Part shown: positions 1 through 58,800 of the stretch, in pieces
How positions within the stretch are numbered: position 1 is the stretch's first letter
How the letters are laid out: every line of letters begins with the position of its first letter
Notes under the pieces: model-generated
What the model saw: only the letters and a program-made list of their open reading frames with translations
What the model was told of the DNA's origin: nothing
The model's database searches: none
Origin: Scyliorhinus canicula
Lineage: Eukaryota
Direction of reading: 5' to 3'
DNA: 64,000 bases
Assembly: GCF_902713615.1 (NCBI RefSeq)
Contig: NW_024055469.1
Location: 62,001-126,000 of the forward strand
Made by a program: the position numbers and the translations under genes

Positions 1-680
1 CCTGAAAGTGACAACGCAGGTTGATAGAGTGGTCAAGAAAGCATACAGCATGCTTGCCTTCATCGGACGGGGTATTGAGTACAAGAGTTGGCAGGTCATG
101 TTACAGTTGTATAGGAATTTGGTTCGGCCACATTTGGAATACTGCGTGCAGTTCTGGTCGCCACATTACCAGAAGGATGTGGATGCCTTGGAGAGGGTGC
201 AGAGGAGGTTCACCAGGATGTTGCCTGGTATGGAGGGTGCTAGCTATGAAGAAAGGTTGAGTAGATTAGGATTGTTTTCGTTGGAAAGACGGAGGTTGAG
301 GGGGGACTTGATTGAGGTCTACAAAATTATGAGAGGTATGGACAGGGTGGATAGCAACAAGCTTTTCCCAAGAGTGGGGGTGTCAGTTACAAGGGGTCAC
401 AATTTCAAAGTGAGAGGGGGAAAGTTTAAGGGAGATGTGCGTGGAAGGTTTTTTACGCAGAGGGTGGTGGGTGCCTGGAACGCTTTACCAGTGGAGGTGG
501 TAGAGGCGGGCACGATAGCATCATTTAAGAAGCATCTAGACAGGTATATGAATGGGTGGGAACAGAGGGAAGTAGACCTTGGAAAATAGGAGACAAGTTT
601 AGATAAAGGATCTGGATTGGTGCAGGCTGGGAGGGCCGAAGGGCCTGTTCCTGTGCTGTAATTTTCTTTGTTCTTTGTTT
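1..680 (+). mobile_element. CR1-clade LINE 3' end (RT C-terminus plus tail)
   Basis: ORF 8..589 carries the CR1 motifs LVRPHLEYCVQFWSP, LERVQRRFTRM and FFTQRVVGAWNALP. It ends in gggccgaagggcctgttcctgtgctgta plus a (ttctttg)-like tail. Confidence 0.9.
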
Positions 681-692
681 CCAGTTCTTTTC

Positions 693-3600
693 TATCCTTC
701 TGGATGGAAAGTACGGGTTGTGCTTCCTGCAGGAAACCCATTCCGGGTGATGAAGCTCAGTGGACCCTGGAGTGGCAAGGAGGAGTCTTCATGAGTCACC
801 TGGCCCCACGTTCGGGCGGGGTGGCTATCTTGTTGGCTCCACATTTTCAGCCAGAGATCTTGGGGTCAAGGAGCCAGTGCCAGGCCGTCTGCGGCACCTG
901 AAGGTCCGTGACAGGGCAGTGCTGATCCACTTTATAAACGTGTACGCTCCGGCAGAAGGACCGCAGCAGGTGACTTTCTTTGGAAAAATGTCCACTCTTT
1001 TTGCCACCATCCCGGTGGGCGAGTGCATCGTCCTCAGAGGAGATTTTAATTGCACCATCCAGGACAAGGACCGTGGTGGAGTCCAGCGCAGCTCGGCGGC
1101 GGTGGTGAAGTTGAGGGACCTGGTTAGGTCCTTTGACTTGGTGGACATCTGGCGGACTCTCCATCCTGAATTGCGGGCGTACACTTATGTGCGGCCTCCG
1201 TTCAGAGCGTCCAGAATCGACCGTCTTTACATTTCCAAGACGTACTTGCCCAGCGTTCTGACGGCTTCCATGGAGCAGGTGCCGTGCTCGGATCACCACC
1301 TGGTGTGGGCGGGGTTCGCCCCGTCCCGCGCTCAGACACGGTCCGCGCACTGGCACTTTAACAACCTGCTGCTGGAGGACAAGCGGTTCCTGGACTCGTT
1401 CCGCCGTTTCTGGGCCGGCTGGAGAAGGAAGCGGGGTGGCTTCCCCTCCTTGAGGCTATGGTGGGATGTGGGAAGCCACATCCGTGCCTTCTGTCAGGGG
1501 TACACGAAGGGGTCCATGGCGAGGCGGAACTCCACGATCGCCAAATTGGCTGAGAAACTCCTCGATCTGGAGTCACGTCTTGCTCAGCCCGATGAGGACC
1601 CGGCCCTGGGGCTGGTGTACAGAGAGGAGGGACACGCTGCGGAACCTGCAACTTGCCGGGTCCCGCGGCGCATGAGTGAGGTCGCGGATCCGTCTCCTGA
1701 CAGATATGGACCGCGGCTCCCCCTTCTTCTACTCGCTGGAAAGAGGACAGGGGGCCTGTCGGCAGATTTCTACGCTGCTGGCCGACGACGCGTTCCTCGT
1801 CTCGGATCCGGAGGGGGTCAGGACCTTGATTAGGGATTTTTATTCCAACCTCTTCTCTCCGGATCCGTCCAGCGAGGACGCTTGCAGAGTTCTGTGGGAG
1901 GACCTGCCGCAGGTCAGCCCGGAGGGCGCCGGGAAGCTCGATGATCCCATCAACCTCCAGGAGCTGACCAGTGCCCTGGACAGTCTGTCACAGGGAAAAC
2001 CCCAGGGCTGGACGGGCTGACCGTGGAGTTCTTCAGGGCGTTCTGGGGAGCGACTATGCGGGGGTCCTGGGGGAATGTACTGCGACCGGGGAGATGCCCC
2101 TTTCGTGGCGCAGGGCCGTCATTGCCCTGCTGCCCAAGAAAGGGGATCTCCGCCAAATTAAGAACTGGCGACCGGTCTCCCTTCTCAGCATGGACCACAA
2201 AACCTTTGCCAAGGTGCTGTCTTTACGCCTTGGCCCCGTGCTGGACCACATGATCCACCCTGACCAATCCGACACAGTCCCAGACCGCACAATATTTGAT
2301 AACATCCACCTGGTCCGGGACATTATTCATTTCTTCCAGAGGACTGGTATGTCGAGCGCCTTCTTGTCTCTTGACCAGGAGAAGGCGTTCGACAGGGTGG
2401 GTTCGAGTATTTGCTCGGGACTCTGCGAGCTTTCAGGTTCGGGATGCATTTTGCCGCCCGGACCCGATTACTGTACGCTGCTTCGGAATGTCTGATTAAG
2501 GTTAACGGGTCTCTGACGGTGTCCCTTCGTTTTGGGAGAGGAGTGAGTCAGGGCTGCCCCCTGTCCGGCCAACTTTATTCTCTGCTTGGAGTCTTTCCTG
2601 TTCCTCCTGCAGAGGAGGTTAACGGGGCTGGTTCTGTGCGAGCCGGACGTGGAGGTGGTCCTCTCAGCTTACGCTGATGACGGGCTTCTCATGTTCACTG
2701 ACCATGGTGACCTGCGTAGGATGCAAGAGTGCCAGGCTGTCTACTCCGCCGCGTCTTCCGCACGGATCAACTGGGCTAAATGTTCTGGACTCCTGGTCGG
2801 TCCGTGGCAGATGGACCCCCTCCCGGAGGAGCTCAGGCCCTTCAACTGGAGTCGGACCAATATCCTGTACTTGGGAGTCCATCTTTGCCCGGCAGAGGAA
2901 GCCTGGCCGGCGAACTGGCAGGAGCTGGAGACCAAGGTCACCGCTTGCCTGGGACGCTGGACAGGACGGCTCCGAGTGCTGTCCTACAGGGGTCGAGTTC
3001 CCGTCATAAACCAGCTGATTGCCGCCATGCTGTGGTACCGGCTGGTCACTTTGACCCCTCCCCCTGATTTTGTCCCACGCATCCAGAGAACCCTGCTTCG
3101 GTTCTTCTGGGACAAACGATTGCACGGGGTCGCTGCGGAGGTCTTGAATCTCCCGATTGCGGAGGGCGGACAAGCGCTGGTGTGCCTTCGCAGCCAGATT
3201 GCGACTTTCCGCCTCAGACGCTGCAGCGATACCTGTACGTCGAGCCTCCTCCACGATGGTGTGCCCTGGTGACGTATTTCTTCTGCCAGGTGCACGGCCT
3301 GAACTATGACCTGCAGCTCCTGTTTGTTGACCAGCAGGGTCTTCGGAACTCTTTGTTGGCGCTGCCTGTCTTGTACCAGGACCTCCTCAATGTCTGGAAC
3401 ATGGTCGCCACGCGCCGCAGCTCTCCCCTGTCAGGAGTTCTGGCCCTCGCAAGGGAGCCGTTGCTCAGGAATCCGCACCTCCACCAATTTCCATTCCGGT
3501 GGCTGGTGGAGCGGAGGGCTGTGGATGCCGGGGTGACCAGGATTGGGGACGCGCTGGGCGGCGGAGGGCGGGCTGGCTGACACCCCACGAGCTAGCCGAG

Positions 3601-4590
3601 CACGGGGCAGTGTCTGTCTGGTACATGGCCAATGCCATCCAAGGCCTCAAAACGGCCGTGCTCGTCCCCGTGGGCATACTGGAGCTAGAGGCGGTGTGGT
3701 TGTGCGGTGGCATCCCGTCTGAGCGGACCCCTGCTCGGACAGAATTTCACATTGGTCCCCGGCCCCTACGCACCCGCCGGGCACCGGCACTGCTGCCTCA
3801 TGCAAATACCCTCCGTGGCATTTCGCACTGCACGGAGGGGTTGCCTGTACGGCCTGCTGTTGCACACCTTCCACCTCCTTCCTCTTGCCTGCCGTCTGGA
3901 GACGCCTTGGCGGGCTTCATTGCCGTCTGGCGGCGGAGGTCCCTGCTGGGGTCCCTCTATAGAGGCGTCATCCCCATAAAACTTGGGGACCTGGGGTGGA
4001 GGGTGCTGCACATGGCAGTGCCGTACAACTATCGGATTCACCACTTCACGGCTCTGCCAGAGACCTACTCCTTTTGCGGCCTGGTGGAGACCGTGGAGCA
4101 TGTTTATGTTGTCTGTCCCAGGCTGCACTCCCTCTTTGATTTCTTGACAACGTTGTTGTTGAGGTTTTATTTGCACTTCAGCCCCACGCTCCTGATCTAT
4201 GGACATCCGGTGCGGCGAGAGGCAGGGAAGGCGGAGGACGTCCTCGTGAACCTGCTCCTGCGCCTGGCCAAACTAGCCATTTATCGGTCCAGGCAGCGGG
4301 CAGCCGAGGGGGTCGTCCAGCCCAACTGTCTGCTCCTCTTCCGCGGCCTTGTTCGTGGCCGGCTGTCCCTGGAGAGGGAGCATGCGGTGTCCACGGGCAC
4401 ACTGGAAGATTTCCGTGCTCGGTGGGCACCGCAGGGGTTGGATTGCCTTATCTATCCGATTTTCACACTCTAATTTGACGGGTTTTAGATAAGTTTCTGT
4501 TCCCTTCCTTTTGGGTTGTGCTCCACTCGTTGTTTTAGCAGCACTCCCTTCTTTTGTTTTATCCATTATTTACTTTATGTTCTTTTGCTT
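693..4590 (+). mobile_element. Tx1-like non-LTR retrotransposon, 5'-truncated ORF2 (APE endonuclease, RT, C-terminal Cys/His domain), frameshifted
   Basis: Endonuclease motifs INVYAP, GDFN, SRIDRLY, SDH (760-1833). RT motifs NWRPVSLL, SLDQEKAFDRV, GVSQGCPLS, AYADD (1971-3272). C-terminal FCGLVETVEHVYVVC. Flanked by the 10-bp direct repeat agttcttttc (683-692, 4591-4600). Confidence 0.88.
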
Positions 4591-6917: not shown

Positions 6918-7523
6918 ATTCACGGGATGTTGGTGTCGGTGGCTGGGCCAGCATTTATTGCCCTTCCTAATTGCCTTTAAACTGAGTGCATCTCAGACAG
7001 CACTTTAAGAGTCAACAAGCTGATTGTGGATCTTGAGTTACGTGTAGGCCAGACCAGGTAAGGATAGAAGATTTCCTTCACTGAAGGACATCAGTGAATC
7101 AGATGGGTTTTTACAGCAATTGACAATCGTTTCAGGGTGTTCAGTAGACTTTACTGAATTCAAATGTGACCTTCTTTCTTGGCAAGATTCATGTCTGGAA
7201 AATCATTAGGACAGTAAAGAAGATTTTAATGTAATTTTCTTTGACCATTTCTCTTCAGTGGATATAAAAATATTGAAAATGGGATAAAGGTCGTTTGGCT
7301 GACAGTCAATCACTGTCCTGTAAGGTAATGAGTCCTTTTGCTTCCCAATTGGCCGAGGAAGGCAGTGTGTCACAAGGATGGATGTGTTGACCGATTAAAG
7401 GCTGGAGGATGGGGGCAGGTCATGTGATCAAATCTCCAGGAATACATTTGATCAAAGTTGGTGAGGAGAGAATGTAGTGAATTTCTATCCTAAGCTGACA
7501 GTGAGGTTTCTGCAAATTTACAG

Positions 7524-7720
7524 GATAATGGAAGTGGAGGTTGAACAGACAGGAAACGCAAACCAAATGTCACATTGCGATCTGACAGAGTCACTCGATT
7601 CATCAGAACCTGAATATCAGCAGCATCTGGGTGTGGAAGGTAAAAGGTTTGTCTGTTCTGTCTGTGAGGGAAGATTTCAGGTCTCAGTGTGACTGGAAAA
7701 GCCCCGAGATTCACAAACCC
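7524..7720 (+). pseudogene. Orphan ZNF leader exon with one relic finger; finger array lost
   Basis: Acceptor tttacag|g, then DLTESLDSSEPEY...FVCSVCEGRFQVSV*LEK, homologous to the leaders at 12900, 27.5k, 39.2k, 47.1k and 51.6k. Followed by a CR1 fragment. Confidence 0.7.
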
Positions 7721-12305: not shown

Positions 12306-12899
12306 TACACCTGTGGCGGGAGAAACAGATGTGGAAACACATTGTGGATCCGCAAACCCTTCACCATCATTGTCAGCTCCCTGGTTTGCAGCTGCGGAGC
12401 TTCTCCCTCCCTCCCGGGAACAGGCCCAGGTTAATGGGCACCATCCTGCTTCACACACTGGAGGGTGGTTCACATCACAGGATGGGGGAGGGGGGATAAT
12501 AAATAAGAGCTGACACTTTGCACTCAAAGCAACGAGGACTATGATCTCTGACAAGGAAGGAAACCCTGGCAGGTGGACGGGGAGGATTCACAAACACCCG
12601 CTGGAGGCCCCAAACCCCCAATAAGACCCATTGATTTTATTGTCAGTTTGTAGACAGGAGCTGGAGAATTGAACCCAGGCAGAGGGGAGGGAGGGAGAAA
12701 ACTGGGAGTGGAGGAAAGAAATGGTGCAGATGGTGAGATGGGTTTGGATTTCAGCCCAGGGAGGAGGGAGAGTGGGTGGGACGGGGATTTACAGCTTCGG
12801 GGAATGGAGAGGAAAAAATGTTCCCGAGAAACTAGAATTGTCTGTTCAGAATTTATATGCTCCAGTGACAGTGATGATGTTTGTAAATTCCTTTTACAG

Positions 12900-14423
<1,524 letters not shown>

Positions 14424-14759: not shown

Positions 14760-14935
14760 ATGAAATGAAAATCGCTTTTTCTCACAAGTAGGCTTCAAAT
14801 GAAGTTACTGTGAAAAGCCCCTAGTCGCTATAGTGGCGCCTGTTCAGGGAAGCTGGTACGGGAATTGAACCATGCTGCTTGGCCAGCCGTGGTCTGTTTT
14901 AAAAGCCAGCAATTTATCCCTGTGTGCTAACCTGA
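14760..14935 (-). mobile_element. tRNA-derived SINE family 2 (tail tgtgacaataagcgattttcattt)
   Basis: Same family at ~22740-22930 (+), 27985-28160 (+, variant), 31008-31190 (-), 42203-42388 (+) and 45449-45626 (-). Confidence 0.7.
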
Positions 14936-15715
14936 TTTTCAGGAGTTAAATTTAGGTTTCCAGGATCTTCTTTTCCACTCTGACACCTTTATTATGTGAT
15001 GTAGTCACGTAATCACATTACCGTCTGTATTTGTGTTGAGTATTTTTTGAGTTTACTTATTTTTGTGGATAAGATAGCACAAATACTAAAGACTGTGTAC
15101 ATATTAAATCTTTTAAATTGGAATCTGTAAATAAGATGTTTTTGTTAATTTATTTAAAAAGGAAAACCCCCTTACTCCATTTCCAAAATGAGAATTCGAA
15201 CTATTTGACTCAAGGTAACTGAACAGGTGCCGAGTGTTTATTGGATCAGACGGTGGAGCAGGAAAAACTCACCCGATTCTGATCTTCATTGTGTGGATTT
15301 ACATTCAAAACCCATCGATAACCTCACTACACCCACTGAGATCAGCTACTCTTCCTTTGGATGCTCTCATGATAGAACTTTTGTGGTCCTTTTGAGGATG
15401 AAATCATGCTTCACACCTGGTTCTGAAATACTATCACTCTGGGTGTAAGGTATTCCTGGGATAAAACATAGTTCTACATCTTGTCACCTAACACAAATTC
15501 ATATCGTCACCCGAGTCCCAGATTTAAATGTGATTGTCCAGTCCAGAAAACATATAGAAATTGACCCCGTTAAATCTGATTCAACAAGCTACAAGAGATA
15601 GTTTGTGTTGTTCACAATGATGACAGTATCAACCTTCTCCCTAACCTAGCCTAACCCTTCTGCTGAACAGGGAGACTCCTTGTTCAGATGGTGACATTTC
15701 CTGTCTGCCCAGTTA

Positions 15716-18569: not shown

Positions 18570-18800
18570 TTACAGGTGGTTAGAAAGGGAGGATTTACAC
18601 AAAGCAAACTCAAACCAGCAATAGGTTTATTTTTTTCCTGAATTTCGATTTTGGACTGACAGATGGCTTTTGTTACTTTCATTTTCAGGGTATTAGAAAA
18701 TGATTTGCAGGCAGGAAACATAAAGAAAACCTGACATCAAACTCTGACAGCATCACTTGATTCATCAGGTCCTGGATATTATCGCACTTTCAGTGTAAGA
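18570..18800 (+). other. Two tandem copies of the ZNF leader-exon start (putative non-coding exons)
   Basis: ttttacag|gtggttagaaagggaggatttac and tttcag|ggtattagaaaatgatttgcag...gattcatcaggtcctggatatt followed by gtaaga. Confidence 0.5.
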
Positions 18801-20159
18801 ATTGAGTTCCAAGACATTACCACTCACTGTAAAATTTCTTCCTCATATCGCCCTGTAGATCTTGCTCCAAATCTTAAATCTGTGTCCTGAAATCCTTTTT
18901 ACAATCAGCTAGTAGGAGCAACGTTACTTTAGCTACTTTACTGAGACCAATCAGAAACTTGAACACCTCTATCATTCTCCTTTTCTCCAAGAAGATCAAC
19001 TGCAGTTTCTCCAACCTAACATTGCAACTAAAATCCCTCATTCCAGGAACTAATAGAACATAGAACATAGAACGATACAGCGCAGTACAGGCCCTTCGGC
19101 CCTCGATGTTGCACCGACATGGAAAAAATCTAAAGGCCATCTAACCTACACAATGCCCTTATCTGGTAAGTCTCCCCTGCACTCTCTCAAGGACCATCAC
19201 ATCCTCCATAATGTGTGGTGATCACTGGTTTGCACAGATCCAGATGTTCAGTCTTCCTGTCTGTGATGTCATCAGGCACCTCCAGTTGCGTGACGACATC
19301 ATCCCCGTTCTCCTCAACTGGGAGCTTTTTCCTCCGACTCTAGAGCTTCTGATATCTTTCCAGCTGCAGGCGACAGTGGGAGATTTTAATATGGAAAACA
19401 GTGAAACTGCTTCACAGCTAAGTATGTCTGAGCATTTATCAATACCTTTGAGCTTTTAGTGCTCTGCTCTGTTACCTGTGAGGGGTTCCATGTCTCTGGG
19501 GCTGGTGTGACCCTTGGAAAACAATGCAAAATGTCTGTGGGAAGAAGGACAACCACCTGTCGACATATAAAATCCCTTCTTTCTCTTTCTCTCGCTCTCC
19601 CCCTCCCCCACCCCACTCTGGAAAACCAAGATTCACGTTAAAATCTGGCAGTCACTCAGTTCATCGAGACCTGAATGTAAGTATTTATGTTTGATCTGCG
19701 GTTCAAGAATTAAACACCTGTGTAGCTGGAAATAGCGAAGAGCAAGATTTGCAAACAAGGATGTGAATATTCCATTAAAATGTTGCTTAGCTGAGTCCCA
19801 ATGTAGGTCAGTGAGCATAGGGGTGATGAGTGAGTGAGTGGGACTCCAGTTTGGCAGCTTCCCTTCCCTGAAGGACATCAGTGAACCAGTTGGGTCTTTA
19901 CGACAATCCAGCAGTTTTCATGGTCGCTTTTCCCAGTGTCGGCCCCACAAATGACCAGATTCATTCAGCTCAATTTCACAACCTGCCTTTGTGTTTTTGT
20001 CGTTCTCTCTCACTCCCTATTTTCTGTTTTCAATCAATTTCACAGGAGATTCAAAGGATTTGCATTTGGGAAACTCAAACCAACATCACATCAAGATCGC
20101 ACGGAGCCTCACAATTTACCATCGCCTGTATATCATCGGAACATCAACAAAGTTTAAAA

Positions 20160-21146
20160 ATGAAAGGAAAAAGTATCATTCACAGTGGGGAAAAACCGTA
20201 CACATGTTCTGTGTGTGGACGAGGATTCAGCCAATCATCTGACCTGTCAAAACACAAGTGCAGTCAGACTGGGGAGAAATCGTGGAAATGTGAGGACTGT
20301 GGGAAGGGATTCAGTTACCCATCTCGCCTGAAACTTCATCGGCGCCATCACACAGGAGAGAGGCCGTTCACCTGCACTGTGTGTGCAAAGGGATTTGCTG
20401 ATTCATCCAACTTACGGCAACACCAGCGGGTTCACAATGGGGAGAGACCGTTCACCTGCTCCAAGTGGGGGAAGGGATTCACCACTTCATCCCACCTGCT
20501 GACACACCAACGGGTTCACACTGGGAAGAAACTGTTCACCTGCTCTCAGTGTGGGAAGGGATTCACACAGTCATCCACCCTGAAGACACACCAGCGACTT
20601 CACACTGGGGAGAGACCATTCACCTGCACTGTGTGTAAAAAGGGATTTGCTGATTCATCCAACTTACGGCAACACCAGCGGGTTCACAATGGGGAGAGAC
20701 CGTCCACCTGCACTGGGTCTAAATAGGGATTTGCTGATTCATTCACACTCCGGAAACAACAGCGGAGTCACACCAGGGCGAGACCATTTACCTGCTCCGA
20801 GTGTGGGAAGGAATTCACTCAGTCATTAAACCTACAGAAACACCAGCGGATTCACACTGAGGAGAGACCATTCACCTGCTCTGTGTGTAAAATGGGATTT
20901 GCTAATTCATAAACTCAGAAACACTAGCGTGTTCAATCGGGGGGAGAAACGTGGAAATGTCGGGACTGTGGGCAAAGGTACAGTTGGAAATTCATCAGCG
21001 CATTCAGACTGGGGAGTGACCATTTTTATGTTCTGTTTGTGGGAAGGGATTGACTAGTTACCCACCCGGCTGACACACTGGTGAGTTCACTCTGGGGATT
21101 CCGTCAATAATCGAACCTGCGGAAACACCAGCCAGTTCACAAATAA
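20160..21146 (+). pseudogene. C2H2 ZNF locus (class A), truncated by a stop at 20724-20726; decayed fingers continue to ~21146
   Basis: Acceptor at 20045/20046; [19 protein letters not shown]...; 4 intact fingers, then stops and frameshifts. Confidence 0.8.
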
Positions 21147-24920: not shown

Positions 24921-25344
24921 TATTGAATTTTTATGATGGTCCTCAGGAGTCTTTGCTGGAAGAGTTCCAGAGATGTAGCTCCCGCATCCCCAGGATTCCG
25001 CTCCACACAGCAGGGTGGGAAGGGCAGTGGCCTGGGAGATTTTGATTATAGTCCTCAGTTTAACGTCATGCTGCTTCCCGACTCAAACAGAAATAACGCA
25101 ATGGATTCAGAGCTCGATTCCACAGGATATACAGCACAGCAACAGACCATTCAGCCCATCCAGTCCCTGCTGGAGTTTCTGCTCCACTCCCATCTTTCCA
25201 CATCTAAATCTCCCATTGTAATCCTCTATTCCCTTCTCCCTCTTGTGTTTGTCTTGTTTCCCCTTCAACACATCTGTACTATTCACTTAACCCACTCCCT
25301 GTGACAGTGAGCTGATTCTCACCATTAGTAGAATAAATCCTGAG

Positions 25345-25910
25345 AGATAGGATTAACTGTCACATAGAAAGGCATCGACTGGTCAGGGATAGGCAGCATG
25401 GATTTGTTAAAGAAAGTTCTTGCCTCACAAATTTGATCAAATTCTTTGAGGAAGTGACAATAAATGTTGCTAAAGATCGTGTAGAAGATGTTGTGCACAT
25501 AGATTTTAGCAAGGCTTTTGACAAAGTCCCACGTGGCAAAAGGTGAAAGCCCATGGGACACAGGGCAATGTGGCAAACTGGATAAAATGTTGGCTCAGTA
25601 ACCGGGGACAAAGGATAATGTTCATTGGCTGCCCTTGCAATTGGAAAAGTTGTTTCAAGTGGTGTGCCACAGGGCTCGGTGTTGGGACCATTACTATGTG
25701 GGCTATATAGTAACAATTTGGACGTGAACGTAGGGAACAATGATTAGGAAATTTGCAGACGACACAAAGATTGGCCAAATTCTGGACATTGTGGAGGATA
25801 GCTATCATCTCCAAAACAATAGAGATGGATTGGTACAGTGGGCAATACAGGGGCAATAGGTAATTTAACACAGAAACGTGTGAGGTCATGCATTTAGGGA
25901 GATCAACCAG
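25345..25910 (+). mobile_element. CR1 RT fragment
   Basis: QHGFVKESSCLTNLIKFFEEVT, DFSKAFDKVP, SGVPQGSVLGPLL, KFADDTKIG. Confidence 0.85.
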
Positions 25911-26197
25911 TTCAGACACACTGGAAGCGATAGGGAGCTGGGACATGGCTTTGAGAGTAACTGAAGGTGTAAGAACTGAAATAGTCGAGTTAGAAAGGAG
26001 GAAAGGCCACAAAAATGCAACATTCAGTAACAGGACATCAATTAATCGCCTCTTACCCCAGTGAAATGAAGGTTTCGATAGTGTGTCTGAAATAATATTA
26101 GTTCACTTGACATATGTTCAGAGGATTAAACTCCAGCCCAGTTACAGAGATCAAAACATCAGCAAAAACAAACTCCAACAGTCAGAATGACCATGGT

Positions 26198-27109
26198 TCA
26201 GTCCTGGATGTGATTAACAGCAGCAACAACAGCAGAATCCAAACCTTGCAGACATTTATCAACCTGTTGCTGTGTCAGATGAGTTGTCCACGTAAATCCC
26301 TTCTCACGCTCAGAGAAGGCGAACGGTCGCTCCCCGGTGTGAGTGTGCTGGTGTGTCAGCAGGTGGGATGAGCGAGTGAATCCCTTCCCACAGTCCGAGC
26401 AGGTGAACGGTCTCTCCCCAGTGTGAACCCGCTGGTGTCTCAGCAAAACACTTGTGGTTTTAAAACTCTTCTCACATTCAGAACATTTGAAAGGTTTCTT
26501 ATCCGAGTGAACAAGTTGGTGTGATCTGAGGCTGGTTAAATAAATGAATCCCTTTCCACATAAGGAGCAGGTGAATAACCTCTCCCCAGTGTGAACTCGC
26601 TGGTGTTTCTGAAGGCCAGATAACTGAGTAAATCCCTTCCCACACACTGTACATCTGAACGGCCTCTCCTCATTGTGAACTCGCTGGTGTATCAGCAGAT
26701 CACTTGTGGTTTTATAACTCTTCTCACATTCAGTACATTTGAAAGGTCTGTTATCACTGTGAACCAGTCTGTGAGTAGCGAGGTGGGATGATCGTGTGAA
26801 TCCTTTCCCACACACGGAGCAGGTGAATGGTCTCTCCCCAGTGTGAGTGCGCTCGTGTTCAATGAGATTCTGTGATCGTTTGAATAGCTTCCCACAGTGA
26901 GAGCAGCTGAACTGTCTCTCAGTGCGAACAACCTGGTGCTTGACCAGGTCCTCTGAGCTTTTAGAGTTGTTATCACAGTCTGACTGGTTAAACAGCCCCT
27001 CATCAATGTGAACTTGCTGGTGGGTCCGCAGGTGGGATGACTGAATGAATCCCTTCCCACACACTGAGCAGGTGAACGGCCTCTCTCCAGTGTGACTGCG
27101 TCGATGCAT
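26198..27109 (-). CDS. Tandem C2H2 zinc-finger protein (class B; ~8 canonical fingers from this ATG) ending in [17 protein letters not shown]
   Basis: 303-aa ORF. The paralogous start is mutated to ACG (27170-27172) and the frame is open up to TGA 27203-27205. Some fingers are degenerate, so it may be a pseudogene. Confidence 0.65.
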   Translation of the reverse strand: MHRRSHTGERPFTCSVCGKGFIQSSHLRTHQQVHIDEGLFNQSDCDNNSKSSEDLVKHQVVRTERQFSCSHCGKLFKRSQNLIEHERTHTGERPFTCSVCGKGFTRSSHLATHRLVHSDNRPFKCTECEKSYKTTSDLLIHQRVHNEERPFRCTVCGKGFTQLSGLQKHQRVHTGERLFTCSLCGKGFIYLTSLRSHQLVHSDKKPFKCSECEKSFKTTSVLLRHQRVHTGERPFTCSDCGKGFTRSSHLLTHQHTHTGERPFAFSEREKGFTWTTHLTQQQVDKCLQGLDSAVVAAVNHIQD

Positions 27110-27649
27110 TTCCAGCAGGGATGGGTAATTGAATCCCTTCCCACAGTCCCCACATTTCCACGGTTTCTCCGTGGTGTCGGTGTGTCTGTCCAGTTTGGAT
27201 GGTCAGTGGAAGCCTCGTCCACACACAGAACACGACAGTGAATGGGGTGATGTTTTTTTCAGGCTGTGTAACTGGTTAAAGCTCTTTCCACAGTCAGTTC
27301 ACTGGATCACTCTCACTCGGTTGTGTGTGTGTCTCGGTGCTTTTCCAGTCACACTGATGTTTGAAATCTTTTCCCACAGACAGAACAGACAAACATTTCT
27401 CCTTCCACATTCAAAGACCGATGGTATTCAGGTGCTCATGAATTGAGTGACTCTGTCAGATCTCGATATGATGTTTGATTTGAGTTTCCCATCTGCAAAT
27501 CATCGTCCTCTTGTACCTTGTAAAAGACATCGACAGTGTCAGGATTACCATTAGTGCAGGATAGAAATTTAGAACCCACAATTCCAGTTTCTATGATTTT
27601 TTTCCTCTCTTGTTTCCCCAAACTTGTGGTCCAATCAAACGTCCTTCTC

Positions 27650-27960
27650 AACTAAACCAGAATGTTGTTTCCAGTGTCTATGAGAGATTCTGTACCCTGA
27701 GGTGTCCACCGGTGTGGAAGGTCTCACGGGTTCCGGTAGACACCGTACGCCCCCTCTCCAGGACCACCCGGGGAATGACAAGACCACAGAAGAGGGACTG
27801 ACAGCCAGAGTTAACCCCCCCCCCCGCCGCTCTGTAAATTGCTGCTTTAATCAGGCCCAAGAGCAGGTCCAGGAGCCGATCCTCTGACTTATTTAGTCCC
27901 CTCCACACTGGGCAGGCAGTGATTAGGAGTGTGGGGTTGAAGTGTAAACCAAATGGAGAA
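27650..27960 (-). mobile_element. Tx1-like 3' fragment
   Basis: EDRLLDLLLGLIKAAIYR...LERGRTVSTGTRETF, homologous to 4230-4450. Confidence 0.7.
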
Positions 27961-31321: not shown

Positions 31322-32899
31322 ATGGAAGGAAAAAGCACTGTTCACAGTGGGGTAAAACTGCATCTGTGTTGTGTGTGTGGACAACGTTTCAACCGTTCAT
31401 CTTGCCTGATGAGACACAAGCGCAGTCACCATGGGGAAAGACCGTATAAATGTGGAGACTGGGAGAGGATTCAATTATCTAGTTTAACATAGACATAGAA
31501 CATAGAACAGTACAGCACAGAACAGGCCCTTCGGCCCTCAATGTTGTGCCGAGCCATGATCACCCTACTCAAACCCACGTATCCACCCTATACCCGTAAC
31601 CCAACAACCCCCCCCTTAACCTTACTTTTATTAGGACACTACGGGCAATTTAGCATGGCCAATCCACCTAACCCGCACATCTTTGGACTGTGGGAGGAAA
31701 CCGGAGCACCCGGAGGAAACCCACGCACACAGGGGGAGGACGTGCAGACTCCACACAGACAGTTACCCAGCCGGGAATCGAACCTGGGACCCTGGAGCTG
31801 TGAAGCATTTATGCTAACCACCATGCTACCCTGCTGCCCCCCATGCTACCCTGCTGGCCTGGAAAGTCACCGACACACTCACGCTGGAGAGAGACCTTTC
31901 ACCTGCTCAGTGTGTGGGAAGGGATTCACTCAGTTGGCTGGCCTGTTGATACACCAGCGCATTCACAGCAGGGAGAGGCAGTTCACCTGCTCCTAATGTG
32001 GAAAGGGATTTACTCAGTCATCGGCCCTACTGATACATCGGCACATTCACACAGGGGAGAGGCCGGTCACCTGCTCTGTGTGTGGGAAGGGAAGCACTGA
32101 TTTCTCTGCTCTGCAGAAACACCAGCGAGTTCACACCAACAAGAGAGAGTTTAATTGATTAAACTGATTGTGGAAAGAGTTTTAAAAGACCACGCACACT
32201 GAGGGAGCACCAGTACATTCACACCGGTTCCACACCGTTCAGCTGCTCTCACTGCCGGAAGGGGTTCAGGCCATCTTTCCACCTTGTGGCACATGAGCAC
32301 ATTCACACTGGAGACAGGCCATTCACCTGCTCTGAATGTGGGAAGGGATTTAATCGATCATCCAACCTGCAGAAACACCAACGTGCTCATAGTGATGAGA
32401 GACCGTTTAAATGCCCAGACTGCAGGAAGTGTTATAAAAGTTCTGAGGATCTGCGGCGTCATCAACGTGTTCACTGACGAGAGAACGTTCACGTGTTCTC
32501 ACTGCGGGACTGGGTTCAGGAGAAAAGGTGACCTAACTGTACACCAGCGAATCCATACTGGGGAGAGACTGTTCACCTGCCATGTGTGTGGGAAGGGATT
32601 CACTTGTTTTGTCCCATCTCACTGCACACCAACATGTTCACATGACTGAGAGACGATTTAAATGTTCTGACTGTGAGAAGAGCTTTAAAAGCAGAAAACT
32701 TCTGCTCACACACCAGCATAATCACTCGGGAGAGAGACTATTCACCTGCACTGAGTGTGGGAAAGGATTCACCCAGTCATCCACTTTGCTGAGGCACCAG
32801 CAGGTTCACAGCAAAGAAAAGCCATTCACTTGTTCCACCTGCCAGAAGGGATTTACCCAGTCATACAACCTGCTGAGACACCAGCGAGTTCGCCAGTGA
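31322..32899 (+). pseudogene. C2H2 ZNF pseudogene (class A), split by an HE1 SINE, with multiple stops and frameshifts
   Basis: MEGKSTVHSG start at 31322; finger fragments in ORFs 31541, 32286, 32284 and 32582; acceptor at 30677/30678. Confidence 0.85.
31488..31840 (-). mobile_element. Young HE1-like V-SINE
   Basis: Near-identical to the copies at 39843-40180, 41623-41960 and 43490-43841. Confidence 0.9.
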
Positions 32900-38880: not shown

Positions 38881-39842
38881 GGTGCCAGTGTCCTTGTGTC
38901 TCTCCACACAGAACAAGTGTACAGTTTCTTCCCAGAGCAATTAAGTTATATTTTTTCAAGCTGTGTAAGTGCTACAGTCAGTTTTCAGGGACACACATTC
39001 GGGTGTTAGTGTTTCTCGGTGTTCTTCCAGTCACACTGATATTTTAAATCTTTTTCCAAATGAGAACCTTCCTCTTTCCACATTCAGAAGCTGATGATAT
39101 TCAGGTCCTGAAGAATAGAGTTATTCTGTTGAATGTTGATCTGATGTTTTGTTTGAGATTTCCGATGGCAAATTCTCCTCACCTTCTAATATCCTGTAAA
39201 AGATGTTACAAAAGTCATCACTGTCAGTCCAGGATAGAAATTCTAAACAGACAATTTTAATTTCTCAGGCATATTTTTTCCTCTCTTGTTCCACCAAAGC
39301 AGTAAATCCCCGCCCCACACACTCTCCCTCCTCCTTGGGATGAAATCGAAACCCATCTCACCATCGTCTTCGTTTCTTTCCTCAACTCCAAGTTTTCTCC
39401 CTCTCTCTCCTCTGCCTGAGTTCAGTTCTCCAAAACACCCTGAAAAAGGAATTTCTGTCAGTCCCAGATAGACATTCAGAAGAGACCAAAATTCTTCTTG
39501 GTTTCAGTTTGCTGCGTGCACATCTTTTCCCCTTCTCACCCTGTATAGGAGTTTCCAGAATCCATGTTAGTCAATGGCAGTGGTGGCGTTGTCACTGGAC
39601 TAATTAACCAGAGACCCAGTTCCAGAACAATGCTCTGTGGGGTTCCCAGGTTCAAATCCTGCCACTTCAGATGGTGAAATTTGAATTCAATAAAAATCTG
39701 GAATTAAAAGACTAATGGTGACCATGAAACCACTGATAATTGTTCTAAAAAAAAATCTGGTACACGAATGCCATTTAAGGAAGGAAATCTTCCATCTTTG
39801 TCTGGCCTATATGTGACTCCAGACCCACAGCAATATGGTTGA

Positions 39843-46769: not shown

Positions 46770-47599
46770 TTTGGACGATCAGTTGAAGCTTCTTCCACAC
46801 ACAGAACATGTGTACAGCTTCTCCTCGCTGTGAATGGTGTGGTGTTTTCAAGGCTGTGTAACTGGTTGAAGCTCTTTCCACAGTCAGTTCACTGGAGCAC
46901 TCTCACTTGGGTGTGTGTGTGTCTTTGTGCTTTTCCAGTCACACTTAAGTTTGAAATCTTTTCCCACAGACAGAACAAACATTTCTCCTTCCACATTCAA
47001 AAGTTCATGACATTCAGATCCTCATCAAAGTGACTGTCAGATCTTGATTTGTTGCTTGATTTGAATTTCCAGTCTGTCGATCCATTCCTTGTAACCCTGT
47101 AAAATCAGTTTACAGGTCAGAAATTCAGAACAGATAATTCTAGTTTCTGGGGAATAATTGTTTCTCTCGTTTCCTAAAGCTGCAAATCCCAGTCCCACAC
47201 TTTCCCCTTCCCACACACTCACCACAATGGTTTCCAGGTCATTAATACTGAGTGCAGCTTTGAATTCCAGATTATCCCTTGAATTTAAATTCTACCATCT
47301 GCATTAACAAATCCATCTGTGTGAGTGCAGGATAGAAATCCCCCCCCCCCCATTCTCCCCTCCTGCTCCAGGATCAGTAAAGTGAGTTAAAGATAATTTC
47401 TCCTGAACAAATCCATTGCTGCATTTCCTTCCTGAAGCCACATTTGTCCACTGGGGCCTGGTACCGGGTGAAAGCGGCAGCTGCCGTTGTGTTGGGTGTT
47501 GAGGCGGTGCGGCTAGTTTGTTATTGGGGGTGTTGAGGCCCCCACTGGGTGTGTGAAGCCTCCCCTCCCACCCACTGCCCCTAACGCCTCCTCCGCTTA

Positions 47600-51501: not shown

Positions 51502-51960
51502 ACTCAGAAGCTCGAACACAAGAGAGGAAATAATGTTCCATAGAAACTAGAATTGTCTTCTCCGAATTTCTATCCTGTGCCAACAATGATAACTTTTATA
51601 AATTGTTTTTAAAGGATATTGGAAGAGGAGGAATCGCAGACAGACGTCTCAAACATCACGTCAAACTCAAACGATTCCTTTTGATCTGAATATCATCGGC
51701 GAGTAGGAGAAATGTTTGTCCGATCTGTCGGCTTCAAAAGGTTTTAAACGTGAGTGTGACGGGAAAAGCACCGAGACCCACACAACGCACACCCGAGTGA
51801 GAGTGTTCCAGCGAACTGACTGTGGAAAGAGCTTCAACTATGACACAGTCTGAGAAAACGTCACACCATTCACAGTGAGGAGCGACAGTGCACATGTTCT
51901 GTGTGTGGACAAGGCTTCCGCTGATTGTCCAATCTGGAGAGACACGGCGAGACCCAAAAC

Positions 51961-53331
51961 ATGGAGAAACCGTGGAAATGTGGGGACTGTGGGAAGGAAT
52001 ACAGATTCCCATCTGAGCTGGAGACTCATCGACGCAGTCACACTGGGGAGAGGCCATTCACCTGCTCTCAGTGTGGGCAGGGGTTCACTCGGTTATCGCA
52101 CCTGCAGGCACACCAGCGAGTTCACACTGGGGAGAAACCATTCACCTGCTCTCAGTGTGGAAAAGGATTAATTGATTTATCCAGCCTGCAGTCACACCAG
52201 CGAGTTCACACTGGGGAGAAGCCGTTCACCTGCTCTCAGTGTGGGCAGAGATTCCGTGCTTTATCCAACCTGCGGAGACATCAGCGACTTCACACTGGGG
52301 AGAGGCCATTCACCTGCTCTCAGTGTGGGAAGGGATTCCATACTTTATCCAACCTGCAGTCACACCAGCGAGTTCACACTAGGGAGAGACCATTCACCTG
52401 TTCTCAGTGTGGGAAGGGATTTATTGATTCATCCACCCTGCGGAAACACCGGCGAGTTCACACTGGGGAGAGGCCATTCACCTGCTCTCAGTGTGGGAAG
52501 GGATTCATTGATTCATCTACCCTGAGGAGACATCAGCGAGTTCACACTACGGAGAGGCCGTTCACCTGCTCTCAGTGTGGGAAGGGATTCATTGATTCAT
52601 TCACCCTGCAGAGACATCAGCAAATTCACACTGGGGAGAGGCCATTCACCTGCTCTCAGTGTGGGAAGGGATTCAGTGATTTATCCACCATGCAGACACA
52701 TCAGCGAATTCACACTGGGGAGAGGCCGTTCACCTGCTCTCAGTGTGGGAAAGGTTTTACTCAGTTATCCATCCTGCAGACACACCAGCGAGTTCACACT
52801 GGGGAGAGGCCATTCAGCTGCTCTCAGTGTGGGAAGGGATTCCGGGATTTACCCAACCTGCGGATCCATCAGCGAGTTCACACTGGTGAGCGCCCGTTCA
52901 TCTGCTCTAACTGTGGGAAGGGATTCACTCAGTCATCCAGTCTGCAGACACACCAGAGAGTTCACACTGGGGAGAAGCCATTCACCTGCTCTCACTGTGG
53001 GCAGAGATTCCGAGCTTCATCCAACCTAAGGAACCATCTGCGAGTTCACACTGGAGAGAAGCTGTTCACCTGCTGTCAGTGTGGGAACGCATTCAGTGAT
53101 TTATCCAGTCTGCAGACACACCAACGAATTCACACTGGGGAGAAGCCATTCACCTGCTCTCAGTGTGGGAAGGGATTTATTGATTCATCCATCCTGCAGA
53201 GACATCAGCGAGTTCACACTGGGGAGAAGCCATTCACCTGCTCCCTCTGTGGGAATGGATTCACACAATTATCCAGTCTGCAGACACACCAGCAAGTTCA
53301 CACTGGGGAGAGACCATTCACCTGCTCTTAG
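51961..53331 (+). CDS. Tandem C2H2 zinc-finger protein (456 aa, 16 fingers, class B), no KRAB
   Basis: ATG 51961 MEKPWKC; highly homogeneous 84-bp units ([10 protein letters not shown]); TAG at 53329-53331. Confidence 0.88.
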
Positions 53332-53345
53332 TGTGGGAAGGGATT

Positions 53346-54216
53346 ACATAGAAACATAGAAATATAGGAGCAGGAACAGATCATTTGGCTCTGCGCCTGC
53401 TCTGCCATTCATTATGATAATGGCTTATCATTCATAGCCTAATTCTGCTTTCCCTTCCATATCTTTAATTAATTAATAAACTTGTTTGTCACAAGTACAC
53501 TTACATTGAAATGAAGTTACTGTGAAAAGCCCCCAGTCGCCACATTCCGGCGCCTGTTCAGGTACACAGAGGGAGAATCTCTGTCCTAAATGGTCTACCC
53601 CGTATCCTCAGACTGCGACCTCTGGTTCTGTACCCTCCCACCATCGGGAAAATCTTTCCTGCATCTACCCTGTTAAGTCCTGTTAGGATAATATAGGTTT
53701 CTATGAGATCCCCCATTCTTCTGAACTCCAGTGGATACAATCCTAACTGATTCAATCTCTCATACGTCAGTCCCACCATCCCAGGAATCAGTCTCGTAAA
53801 CCTTCGCTGCACTTCCACCTGAGCAAGAACATCCTTCCTCTGATAAGGAGCCCAATACTGCTCACAATATTCCAGGTATGGCCTCACCAAGGCCCTGTGT
53901 AATAACAGCAAGATATTCCTGCTCCTGTACTTGAATCCGCTCGCAATGAAGGCTAGCACAGCATTTGCCTTCTTTACCGCCTGCTGTAGCTGCATGCTTA
54001 CCTTCAGTGACTGGTGTACAAGGATACCCAGGTCTCGTTGCACATTCCCCTCTCCTAATTTATGGCCGTTCAGATAATAGCCCGCCGTCTCGTTTTTGTT
54101 GTCAAAGTGGACAACCTCGCATTTCTACAAATTATACTGCATCTGCCATTCATTTGCCCACTCACTCAACTTGTCCAAATCACAATGAAGGATCTCTGCA
54201 TCCTCCTCACAGACCC

Positions 54217-54247
<31 letters not shown>

Positions 54248-55605
54248 GCAAAGTGGTGTCATCTGCAAATTTGGAGATATTGGATTTTCCTCCCTCACCA
54301 AATCATTAATATATAGGGTGTTGCAGTGGTTATCACTGTTGCCTCACTGTGCTGTGGACCAGTGTTTAATCCTGCCCCGGGTCACTGTCCGTGTGGATAC
54401 AAGTGTCTCCGTGGTCTCACCCCCATAACCCAAAGAAGTGCAGGGTAGGTGAATTGGCCACGCTCAATTGCCCCTCAATTGGTAAAAAGGAATTGGGTAC
54501 TTTAAATTTTTCTTAAAATCATAAATATATCTTGTGAATATCTCAGGTCCTAGCACCGATCCCTGTGGTATCCCACTAGTCACTGCCTTCCAGTTTGAAA
54601 AAGACCATTAATTCCTACTCTGTTTCCTGTCTGCCAACCAGTTTTCTATCCATATCAATTCACTACCCCTAATTCCAAGTGCTTTAATTTTACACATTAA
54701 TCTCTTATGCGGGACTTTGGTCAAAAGCCATCTGAAAGTCCAAATATCACATCCACTGGCTGCCCCTCGTTAACTCTACCAGTTACACCCTTGAAGAATT
54801 CCAGTAGATTTGTCAAGCATGATTGTCCCTTCATAAATCCATGCTGACTGTCCGATCCTGCCACTCGTTTCTCAGTGCTTTGCTATAAAATCTATGAGAA
54901 TGGAGTCTAGAATTTTCCCCACTGCCGATGTCTGATTTGCTGGTCTATAATTCCCTGTTTTCTCTCTCTATCTCTTTTTAAATGGTGGAATTACATAAGC
55001 CAATCTGCAGGAACTGTTCCAGAGTCTATAGAATCCTGGAAGATGACCACCGTTGCATCCACTATTTCTACACGACTTCCCTAAGTACTTCGGTTGCAGA
55101 TTATCAGACCCTGGGGATTTACCACCCTTCAATCCCATCAATTTCACCAACACCATTTCTCTCCTAATATTGAGCTCCTTCAGTTCCTCCCTCTCACTAA
55201 ATCCGGCGCTTCCCAACATTTCTGGTATCTGCTTTGTGAAGAAAGCAGCAAATTATGTATTTATTTTCTCACCCATTTCTTTGTCGCCTCTGATACAATC
55301 AGCCTGATTTCCTGTTTTATGCCATTCCCAACATCACCACTGCAGTTTGGGGGTCTATATACGATGCCCACTAAGTTTTTTGCCCCTTGGTGTTTCTCAG
55401 CTCCACCCATACAGATTCCACATTGTTGGAGCTAATATCCTTCCTATTACATTAATTTACTCTTTAACCAGCACTGCCACTCCACTGCCTTTTCCTTTTT
55501 GTCTGTCCTTCCTAAATACTGAATAGATTCAATTCCCATCCCTGGTCATCCTGCAGCCATGTCTCCATAATCCTGATGATCTCACTCCCGTTTACATCTA
55601 TTTTC
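53346..55605 (-). mobile_element. CR1 LINE (RT, internally deleted) inserted into the ZNF 3' end, with nested SINEs
   Basis: ORF 53558-54043 QRDLGILVHQSLK...ALVRPYLEYC; KSPGSDN at ~55.1 kb; tail (tatgtttc)n at ~53346. Confidence 0.88.
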
Positions 55606-55607
55606 AC

Positions 55608-55800
55608 AATTCACTCGGTATGCCATCTGCAGTCACACCAGGGAGTTCATACTGGGAAGAGGCCGTTCGCCTGCTCTCAATGTGCGATGAGATTTAGTAA
55701 TTTATTGAACTTTCTGAGACAACAACATGTTCACAACAGATTACAGGGATTGGATTCTGCTGTTATTGTTTCTGTTCTCAATTACATCCAGGACTGCATT
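55608..55800 (+). pseudogene. Displaced terminal fingers and conserved post-stop element of the 51961 ZNF
   Basis: HLQSHQGVHTGKRPFACSQC...VHNRLQGLDSAVIVSVLNYIQD. Confidence 0.8.
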
Positions 55801-58800
55801 TTGTTCATTCTGTTGGTCAATGGGGATGGTCAGAGGGTTTCTTTCTGCTGGACTGGCTGGTCTCACGGCTTCGCCTCTAGTGGGCTGATTCTCTCTGAGC
55901 CTTCTTGCGAATATCTGGTTTCACATTTCACAAGGAGTGAAAGGGGTTTGGCGGTTAAAAGATGTTTCATTGCTATTTCTGTTTGGAAACCCCAAAAATC
56001 ATGCTTCATTGCCATGAAGATGGGCTATGGTGGTTACATAATTCTTTTGTTTAATTTATCTTCATGCTTCTCACAGAAGAAAACAATCAGGGTATGAGGG
56101 GCAAGTTGTCTGAGGTGCACTGGGAAACTTCATTAAATTGTGTGGTGGGAGACAGGCAATCAGTAATATTGAAGGAATTATTACAGATTTACACTGGGAT
56201 TGGTTAGCTCAGTTGGCTGGATGGCTGGTTTGTGCTGAGTGACACCAACAGCACAGGTTAAATTCCCATACCGGCTGAGGTTAGCCATGGACTTTGTCAA
56301 TATTTACGCTCCACATGATTCTCCACCCACCCCTCTACATCTCCCCATCAGCATATCCTCTATTCCTTTCTCCCTCTGTGTATGTCTCTAGCTTTACGTT
56401 CAATGGATTCATGCTGTTCACCTCAACCACTCGCTGTGGTAACGGGTTCCACATTCTCACCACTCACTGGGGAAAGAGGTTTCCACTGAAATTCCTATTG
56501 GATTATTGAATCCCTTCATAATCTCAAAGACTTCCACCAGATCACCCATCAGCCTTTGCTTTTCCAGAAAAAAGCAGCTCCAGCCTTTCCTGAGTGTTAA
56601 ATGCTCTCAGTTCTGTATATTATGAATCTTTGTTGCACCTTATCCAGTGCCTCTATTTCCTTTATCGAAATGGAGATCACCAATGTTGACAGAGCTCCCA
56701 GTGTAGTCTAACCATCGTTCTAAACAAGCTGAACATTTCCTCTGTGCTTTTCAATTCTATCCCTCTGCAATGGAACCCTATGTATGGGCTCCCCACTTTC
56801 GGAAAGATGTGATGTTCTTGGGGTGTAGAGGACATTAATGAGAATGGCACCAGAGATGAGGGACTCCAGTTAGTTGGAGTGACTGGAGCTGCTGAATTTC
56901 TCCCGAGATCACAGCATCTGGAGGGTGGGGAATGAGGCCATTCAGCCCTTTGAGACCGTGTTGGCTCTCTGTGGAGGAAGCCAGTCTGCCCATTGCCCCG
57001 TTCTATCCCCAAATCCCTGTGGGTTTATTTCTCTGAGTGCCTGTCCAATTTCCTATTGAAATCCTTCTGTCATCTCTGCATCTCCTACCCTCATAGGCAG
57101 TAGGTTCCAGGTCGTTACCACTCGCTTTACATGTACACAAGGCTTCTCGAGCACTGAGAAGTCTATTTGGCCCATTTTTCCCATGCCAGCTCTTTGTACA
57201 GCAACCCATTTAATCCCAGAGTTGGACTATTTTGTTTTCTTTTTCAGAATGTACCAAATTCCCTTTTGGAAGTTACAGTCCAATGAGATTCCAGCACCTC
57301 ATTGCAAATGGACAGTGCATTACAAATCACAACGATTCGCTGTGTTTTACAGCAAATAATTGTGCGTATGGTGTGTCTGGAGTTTCACAGTATTCAAAAT
57401 GGTGTCAATGCTGTGGTTATTACACTAAATAAGACCCAATCTTTATCAATGATTTTGGTGAGGACACCGAGTGTAATATATCCTTGTTTGTGGACAATTA
57501 GAACAAATGTACATTTTTATAAAACCTCTCACTACCACTGGACCACCTGAAGTGTTTTAAAGCCAATGGAGTACTTTTGAAATGTATTCACTGTTGTAAT
57601 GTAGGAAGCTGTAAGTACGCATATGTAATCACATTTAGGTTTTAAATTGTTATTTTCATAGTGCATTCACTGTCATTAGTAATAAGGTCAAGGAAGCCCT
57701 TTTATGTCTCTAATATGTGGCTTCCTGCAGCCATTTCACCTGTACCGTTTCTGTATGAACTACGTATTGATTTCATAGCAATAAACAAGAATTAAATTCA
57801 TGATTATTCAGTAGTTAACATTGATTATCATTAGTGAATTGGTGTATTAGGTAATTATATTGCAAAGACTAGATCTTTAATTTTAAAAATAACACAATCA
57901 ACCAAAATGTTTCCAGAAACTGCAGAGCTATCAGAATTTGTTTGAAAAATAAATTACTTTTATAATTTTGAGAAGTTACAAGACACCATATTCTGCCAAG
58001 AATATGTGGGCTGGGCAGTGGAGTAATGGTATTGTTACTGGGCTAGTAATCCAGAGACCCAGGTTAATGCTCTGGGGATCTGGGATTGAATCTGCCTCTG
58101 ACAGATATTGAATTTGAATAAAATCTCAAATTAAAAGTCGATTTATGACATTGTTGATTGTTGTAAAAACCCATTTGGTTCATTAATGTCCTTTTGGAAT
58201 CTGCTCTCCTTACGTGGCCTGGTCTACATGTGACTCCAGATCTACAGCAATGTTGTGGTTGGTTTGTAAGCCTCCTCTGAAATAGCCTCACAAGACACGC
58301 AGTTCAAGGGCAATTGGAATGTGCAGTAAATGCTGGTCCAGCCAGTGACCCCCACCTCCCATTAATGAATAATTCTTAAGAAGGCTCATTGTTCAATCTG
58401 AAGATTAGTAAGAAACTGTCTCTTTGATTGGATTTGATTTATTGTCACGTTTCCCGAGGTACAGTGAAAAGTATTGTTCTGCCTACAGTCCAGACAGATC
58501 GTTCCATACATGAAACAATCTAGGACATCCGATAAATACACAATGTAAATACATAGACACAGACACAGTGTGAAGCGTAAGTGACCTAGTGTATCTTGTA
58601 TCAAATGTATCAATTAAAAATTGTATTAATTAGCTACCAATCTAACGTGATTAAATAAGTAGTGATCCTTAATTGAGTTACAATTAATTAAACAATAATG
58701 AATCAGTAGTTATAGTAAAAGTCTGAGTTTTATTTGTTGTAAAAATATAAAAGCTTAATCGCTGTGTATATAAAGAATGTGCGATGAGGATAAATGTACC

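Follow-up and report, generated by a model that had tools for sequence, protein, structure and literature searches.

Several zinc finger genes of the catshark Scyliorhinus canicula are preceded by a leader that carries remnants of three fingers, each broken by a TGA codon at the same place in different copies. Are these stops recoded during translation, kept by selection as part of a regulatory leader, or inherited from a decayed ancestor? We addressed this question in a 64,000-nt stretch of DNA (assembly GCF_902713615.1, contig NW_024055469.1, positions 62,001-126,000, forward strand), hereafter the window, in which all coordinates below are given. The window contains a transposon-rich cluster of fingers-only C2H2 genes, and a six-frame pattern scan over its whole length identified eight C2H2 arrays of 5 to 16 fingers each. 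Three of the loci (9.6k, 20.1k and 31.3k) form class A. The broken leader defines class B and was found, using nhmmer and MAFFT, at five loci and in one orphan fragment. The five leaders are:

12901-13499, plus strand, 13.5k locus
27516-27173, minus strand, 27.2k locus
39192-38881, minus strand, 38.8k locus (39.0k copy)
47095-46743, minus strand, 46.7k locus
51616-51960, plus strand, 52.0k locus (51.8k copy)

No KRAB or SCAN domain was found in these shark fingers-only genes. Protein searches with the loci of the window retrieved mostly generic many-finger proteins and no catshark protein for these loci, and a cluster look-up of five window ORFs found none of them in the collection searched; exact gene-product look-ups with ORFs of the window returned the genome assembly itself or no match. 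An ORF run at 8-4473 (plus strand) resembles the endonuclease and reverse transcriptase of a LINE-type retrotransposon, and a second reverse transcriptase-like ORF lies at 53558-54043 (minus strand), directly behind the 52k array.

The anatomy of the leader is best described for the 27.2k copy, which consists of the following parts, together with the block upstream of it and the array behind it:

27640-27517, minus strand, block P, about 125 nt, common to all five class B loci (nhmmer, MAFFT)
27516-27394, minus strand, segment U, the non-finger part of the leader, common to classes A and B
27393-27309, minus strand, relic finger 1, with TGA1 at 27351-27349 (helix position +3)
27308-27236, minus strand, relic finger 2 (stop-TDCGKSFNQLHSLKK..), with TGA2 at 27301-27299 replacing the first Cys
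27235-27173, minus strand, relic finger 3, with TGA3 (helix position -1) at 27205-27203 in the frame of the array
27170-27172, minus strand, start position in the former TGEKP linker, ACG in this copy
26198-27169, minus strand, open frame encoding the constant first finger and eight further C2H2 fingers

Block P, at which homology to the other copies begins abruptly, lies upstream of an acceptor-like (T)nACAG/G motif present in nine of 11 copies and preceded in class A by a long pyrimidine tract. Some annotated shark proteins have a translated N-terminus (..DLTESL..EYHRxLNVEGE) that matches segment U, which contains a stop in the 27.2k copy. The pattern C-x2-C-x12-H-x3-H is still recognisable in relic finger 1, with a stop inside, at 27325-27387 and 46915-46977 in the pattern scan. 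Relic finger 2 aligns to CGKSF..H and relic finger 3 likewise to finger sequence, its second His being lost in both classes. The leader thus has the spacing of a Krüppel-type C2H2 relic and ends in a TGEKP-like linker reading T[M/T/I]EKPW, followed by the constant first finger WKCxDCGKGFxYPSxLExHRRSH. The proposal of the initial annotation that the leader consists of former coding fingers is upheld. Relic finger 1 (27309-27393, minus strand) and relic finger 3 (27173-27235, minus strand) also resemble each other, a likeness that suggests an old internal duplication. At the other end, the 27.2k gene runs beyond the usual end of the array (26198-26340, minus strand) into the 3' segment shared by the family, and its peptide-like tail recurs in a remnant ORF at 55576-56097 (plus strand).

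Parts of the leader also occur with no array behind them:

7477-7718, plus strand, orphan copy with segment U and relic finger 1, TGA1 at 7690
48872-48714, minus strand, orphan fragment with segment U, with or without relic finger 1
18637-18797, plus strand, orphan fragment with segment U, with or without relic finger 1
19624-19732, plus strand, orphan fragment in which the TGA1 site is altered (GTGTAGC)

Three orphan fragments sit 0.4-1.9 kb upstream of another zinc finger gene on the same strand. The orphans are probably what is left of dead class B genes.

All 16 codon positions named in the initial annotation were confirmed, a minus-strand coordinate there being the lowest base of the codon. 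With every codon checked, the stops are distributed as follows:

TGA1, at 7690, 13055 and 51757 (plus strand) and at 27351-27349, 39033-39031 and 46941-46939 (minus strand)
TGA2, at 13359 (plus strand) and at 27301-27299 and 46891-46889 (minus strand), with CGA at 51812
TGA3, at 13461 and 51922 (plus strand) and at 27205-27203 and 46781-46779 (minus strand)

TGA1 is thus retained in all five aligned copies and in the orphan at 7690, TGA2 in three of five (the 51.8k copy having CGA and the 39.0k copy AAA at this site), and TGA3 in four of four, having been deleted in the 39.0k copy, which lacks the first half of relic finger 3. TGA3 lies 33 or 39 nt upstream of the start position and is therefore in frame with the main ORF in every copy that has it, as annotated. 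At the same site class A has sense codons, namely the CAA at 20232 and the CGT at 31394 already reported, and CTA at the third locus. The suggested origin of TGA3 from a CGN codon fits these class A codons (CGT, CAA or CTA), and that of TGA2 from TGY fits its place at the first Cys. Matching TGA positions across the leaders also bear out the view that the stops are shared and positionally homologous. The homology of the leaders is real and beyond chance, but the TGAs are retained no better than other triplets. When random triplets of the same relic fingers were considered, 21% in finger 1, 88% in finger 2 and 33% in finger 3 were retained at least as well as the respective TGA (joint P = 0.19). 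Extra conservation of the stops is accordingly refuted for this sample of five to six copies; retention at background frequency had been named beforehand as the outcome that would speak against it. The TGAs are shared by descent and were probably homogenised by conversion.

The relic fingers do not behave as coding sequence. Identity by codon phase is flat in relic finger 1 (0.77/0.77/0.78) and relic finger 2 (0.81/0.78/0.77); the corresponding values for the first real finger are 0.93/0.77/0.76. The relic fingers contain 13 gap runs, ten of which are not multiples of three, in addition to a 249-nt repeat insertion in one copy; two adjacent real fingers have a single 9-nt gap. The distance from TGA1 to TGA2 is 50, 50, 55 or 304 nt and never the 48 nt that would keep the frame, so that in no copy, that at 27.2k included, do relic fingers 1 and 2 share a frame. 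TGA2 and TGA3 are 96 or 102 nt apart in two copies, which keeps the frame, and 110 nt apart in two others, which does not. Frame breaks between relic fingers had been noted initially in the copies at 46.8k and 51.8k; they are present there but not limited to them. Stops, frameshifts and flat periodicity are together what loss of coding constraint in a C2H2 relic looks like. In the 38.8k leader the relic fingers have in addition suffered 9-, 13- and 31-nt deletions. The 249-nt insertion of repeated DNA, at 13103-13351 in the 13.5k leader, splits relic fingers 1 and 2. Its GT..AG ends raised the possibility of an ancestral intron, a reading that was dropped because its first 65 nt belong to a repeat of which the window has at least seven other copies, and its last 150 nt match 14935-15082, within the 3' flank of the 13.5k gene, at 89%.

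These observations bear directly on whether the TGAs are recoded, either as selenocysteine at stop-x-x-C or by readthrough, which would yield an N-terminally extended protein with three more fingers. Several features invite this reading: the stop is always TGA, TGA2 occupies a Cys position where U-x-x-C would resemble a redox motif, and TGA3 is in frame with the array. However, the frames of fingers 1 and 2 disagree in all copies and those of fingers 2 and 3 in two, TGA2 is replaced by CGA or AAA in two copies, codon periodicity is absent, most indels are frame-breaking, and no ATG opens a frame through the fingers. Rfam produced no match in the whole window at gathering score, the level at which the 3'UTRs of class B loci other than 27.2k were scanned for SECIS, and none at E ≤ 10 within 25000-27800; we therefore found neither a SECIS nor any other Rfam element. 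Conserved RNA structure was likewise dropped, since RNAalifold, applied to four leaders, gave a weak consensus of -19 kcal/mol over 374 columns with a penalising covariation term (+2.88). A selenoprotein gene is expected to have a SECIS in its 3'UTR and a single uninterrupted, conserved frame that includes the UGA, with Sec or Cys at that site in homologs, and programmed readthrough to leave coding-type conservation in the same frame on both sides of the stop; the catshark leader displays none of these. We therefore reject recoding, to which we assign next to no probability, because the relic fingers lack coding behaviour and neither a SECIS nor a conserved RNA fold was found. The doubts about selenocysteine expressed in the initial annotation (no SECIS, fingers out of frame), to which the CGA and AAA at the TGA2 site can be added, were well founded. 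In-frame TGAs, one of them at a Cys position, are what the leader has in common with selenoprotein genes and programmed readthrough; it differs from them in having no SECIS, no continuous frame, no coding constraint and no conserved TGA at the Cys site. It is not a member of either system, nor does it work like them. Thus, a tempting false lead is closed: repeated TGAs, even with one at a Cys position, are here not sites of selenocysteine insertion or readthrough.

If the relic fingers do not code, they might still have been selected at the nucleotide level. Conservation was expressed as mean pairwise identity among the five class B copies, with bootstrap intervals where given:

upstream of block P, 0.39 (no homology), interval not computed
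block P, 0.69 (0.632-0.736)
segment U, 0.685 (0.629-0.734)
relic fingers 1-3, 0.79 (0.755-0.822)
third positions of the first real finger alone, 0.76, interval not computed
third positions of the first two real fingers pooled, 0.70 (0.63-0.78)

The relic fingers diverge about as much as the synonymous sites of one clearly orthologous finger, and are somewhat better kept than P and U (0.79 versus about 0.69) and than the pooled third positions (0.70). Because of this excess, the block of relic fingers 1 and 2 may be under mild constraint, with which the data agree weakly. Similarity between the copies is mosaic. Identity between the 27.2k and 46.7k copies is 0.93 for relic finger 1 and 0.90 for relic finger 2, yet 0.62 for block P; between the 13.5k and 38.8k copies it is 0.81 for block P, yet 0.70 and 0.62 for the two relic fingers. 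Such alignments suggest recombination or gene conversion between paralogs: different segments favour different relationships, which is the pattern of conversion or recombination and not that of a uniformly constrained element.

According to the strongest form of the selective explanation, the fossil-finger leader is a regulatory 5'UTR in which the stops, uORFs or a nucleotide element in fingers 1 and 2 tune translation, and for that reason has been kept throughout the family. In line with this idea, identity in relic fingers 1-3 reaches 0.79-0.82 compared with about 0.69 for P, U and pooled third positions. Moreover, 12 positions around TGA1, AGTGTGAC.GGAA, are invariant in all five aligned copies and matched by the orphan at 7690, and one upstream ATG (TGAatgT) is common to four of five copies. 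Yet retention of the TGAs is at background level, and the high identity is specific to particular pairs (0.62 to 0.93 within the same segment) rather than uniform. The leader has also tolerated frame-breaking indels, the 31-nt deletion and the 249-nt insertion, and covariation is lacking. The uORFs do not speak for regulation either. The five leaders contain 5, 8, 8, 2 and 3 upstream ATGs, in total 26 versus 33.7 expected from base composition, a weak depletion. The TGAatgT start, in weak context and opening uORFs of 25-60 codons, is the sole one common to four copies; another, in relic finger 1, is present in three of five (uORFs of 11-32 codons), and the remaining ones are copy-specific, with lengths ranging from 1 to 60 codons overall. 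Position and length, which would be conserved among homologs of a regulatory uORF, are not conserved here. Since uORF starts and lengths vary between copies, and frame-breaking indels and the insertion are tolerated, the leader is not the conserved uORF-bearing one that was initially envisaged. A regulatory role is unsupported, and we regard a selected regulatory 5'UTR as rather improbable. About as improbable, in our estimate, is the specific proposal that the ~230-nt block of relic fingers, especially fingers 1 and 2, serves as a control element that acts at the nucleotide level throughout a zinc finger family of sharks and rays devoid of effector domains. If true, such an element would be slightly better preserved than synonymous sites and, together with upstream ATGs and in-frame stops, would limit translation from a start codon born in a finger linker.

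Whether the relic fingers reach the mature mRNA is a related matter. They might be intronic or lie upstream of the real transcription start, the array exon beginning near MEKPW or a splice skipping them. A protein of Heterodontus francisci (P0033) joins ..EYHRPLNVEGE straight to array-side sequence without relic fingers in between, and the DNA offers a donor-like GTGTGA at TGA1 and an acceptor-like CCAG before TGA2. However, only 50 nt separate this donor from this acceptor, the best acceptor-like motif is located 5' of segment U, and the catshark has no AG at a P0033-type junction (CCAAC, CCAAA or CCAAT). The layout of P0033 could equally result from loss of DNA between relic fingers 1 and 3, whose likeness would offer the substrate for such a deletion. 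In a word search, 14 small assemblies from five studies (33-190 million letters, presumed to be RNA) contained 43-59% of the sampled words of 27160-27640; four runs of unclassified kind contained 53-55% of the leader words, so that the probable RNA assemblies hold the leader about as fully as the unclassified runs. Taken together, we consider absence of the relic fingers from the mature mRNA unlikely.

Translation of the class B genes appears to begin in the linker that once followed relic finger 3. The start ATG has replaced the Gly codon of the TGEKP linker; two copies have it within GGCACCATGG and one within AACATGG, which are both strong Kozak contexts. MEKPW had been annotated as the shared reading of class B, which holds for three of the five loci (ATG at 13500, at 38880-38878 and at 51961 in the 13.5k, 38.8k and 52.0k copies, respectively); the 27.2k copy has ACG and the 46.7k copy ATT (46742-46740). 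In the 46.7k copy, a new in-frame ATG is found 27 nt upstream (46769-46767, minus strand), just behind TGA3 and in the good context AAAatgG; judging from its position and context, it seems to substitute for the lost start. MEKPWKC also opens annotated proteins of Pristiophorus japonicus (P0001) and Mustelus asterias (P0005). The linker-born start is thus an old feature, widespread among sharks. Shark gene models of this family are inconsistent, in that they begin at MEKPWKC, read through the leader, or skip it, which makes the leader a practical matter for shark genome annotation.

Only the 52.0k locus, where the ATG is followed by an undamaged 16-finger array, is fully intact among the five class B genes. 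The 27.2k copy has lost its ATG, the earliest in-frame one being at 27109, within finger 1. The 13.5k copy has an in-frame TAG behind the first real finger, the 38.8k copy has its first real finger destroyed, and the array of the 46.7k copy is frameshifted after six fingers. In all, three to four of five class B loci and one of three class A loci are damaged. Such damage among the class B genes is ordinary birth-and-death evolution.

Class A shares segment U with class B. The stretch comprising relic finger 1 and most of relic finger 2 is missing from class A; its size is 127-155 nt depending on the class B copy, and 146-155 nt in three of four. The idea that class A is short of class B by exactly two finger units was dropped, because the difference is not 168 nt. 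In class A the counterpart of relic finger 3 is read in frame behind an ATG (..LNMEGKS..) as a degenerate finger whose second His is lost or whose Cys spacing is broken.

We consider it likely that the class B leader is the decayed N-terminus of an old fingers-only C2H2 gene and that its TGAs were inherited rather than selected or recoded. In the founder of class B, the original start would have been lost (..LN[M/V]EG.., ATG in class A and GTG in class B), and the first three fingers would have gained stops and frameshifts. Translation would then have shifted to the ATG that replaced the Gly codon of the linker before the constant first finger, in its strong Kozak context. A unit of roughly 1.5 kb, consisting of P, U, the three relic fingers, the array and ~200 nt of 3'UTR, would subsequently have multiplied. 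If the leader had decayed in the founder before this multiplication, matching TGAs would be inherited; they would probably also have spread by gene conversion between paralogs. The relic fingers would be transcribed as the 5' part of a large terminal exon behind the (T)nACAG/G acceptor, acting only as a long, uATG-containing 5'UTR. Of the interpretation put forward in the initial annotation, the former coding fingers, the shared stops and the doubts about selenocysteine are thus kept, and the conserved uORF-bearing leader is not.

Degenerate motifs commonly occupy the spacer that precedes a zinc finger array, and tandem fingers that lose their Cys or His ligands are well recognised in C2H2-ZNF genes. 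Such motifs in Krüppel-type zinc finger genes are the closest known phenomenon, an example being ZNF443 with 4 degenerate motifs among 19 (PMC2667407). The third finger of class A, a degenerate finger still in frame, corresponds to such motifs. The class B leader goes one step further, its fingers having stops and frameshifts and lying outside the ORF, with the start moved into a finger linker. A narrow literature search found no paper describing a stop-bearing relic-finger leader with a linker start for a whole family. For mammals, ZNF clusters and effector domains are described as having been duplicated and lost in a lineage-specific manner (PMC2443715). The catshark locus is similar to such birth-and-death or concerted clusters in its tandem arrangement, many dead copies, arrays of 5-16 fingers and mosaic paralogs, but differs in that KRAB or SCAN was not found in these shark fingers-only genes and in that the shared unit is about 1.5-2 kb long with abrupt ends. 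It illustrates that a large transcription-factor family can lose its N-terminus and yet work, coding fingers turning into leader and a new start arising inside a finger linker.

Besides the somewhat better conservation of the relic fingers, two observations count against inheritance from a decayed founder. One is that a single class B gene of five in the window is fully intact. The other is that homology stops abruptly ~125 nt upstream of the acceptor-like motif and ~100-250 nt past the stop, a pattern left unexplained if a larger duplication had simply decayed neutrally. A processed retrocopy would be expected to show a poly(A) tract where homology stops, a target-site duplication and no remains of introns; class B homology ends near an AATAAA-like site, where no A tract was seen, and the acceptor-like motif with its pyrimidine tract is retained. 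Between the 13.5k and 38.8k loci, homology extends ~130 nt further upstream than among the remaining class B copies (12662-12790 and 39303-39432, G-rich) and ~270 nt further on the 3' side. Judging from these extended alignments, the two loci may stem from a later duplication with a larger unit.
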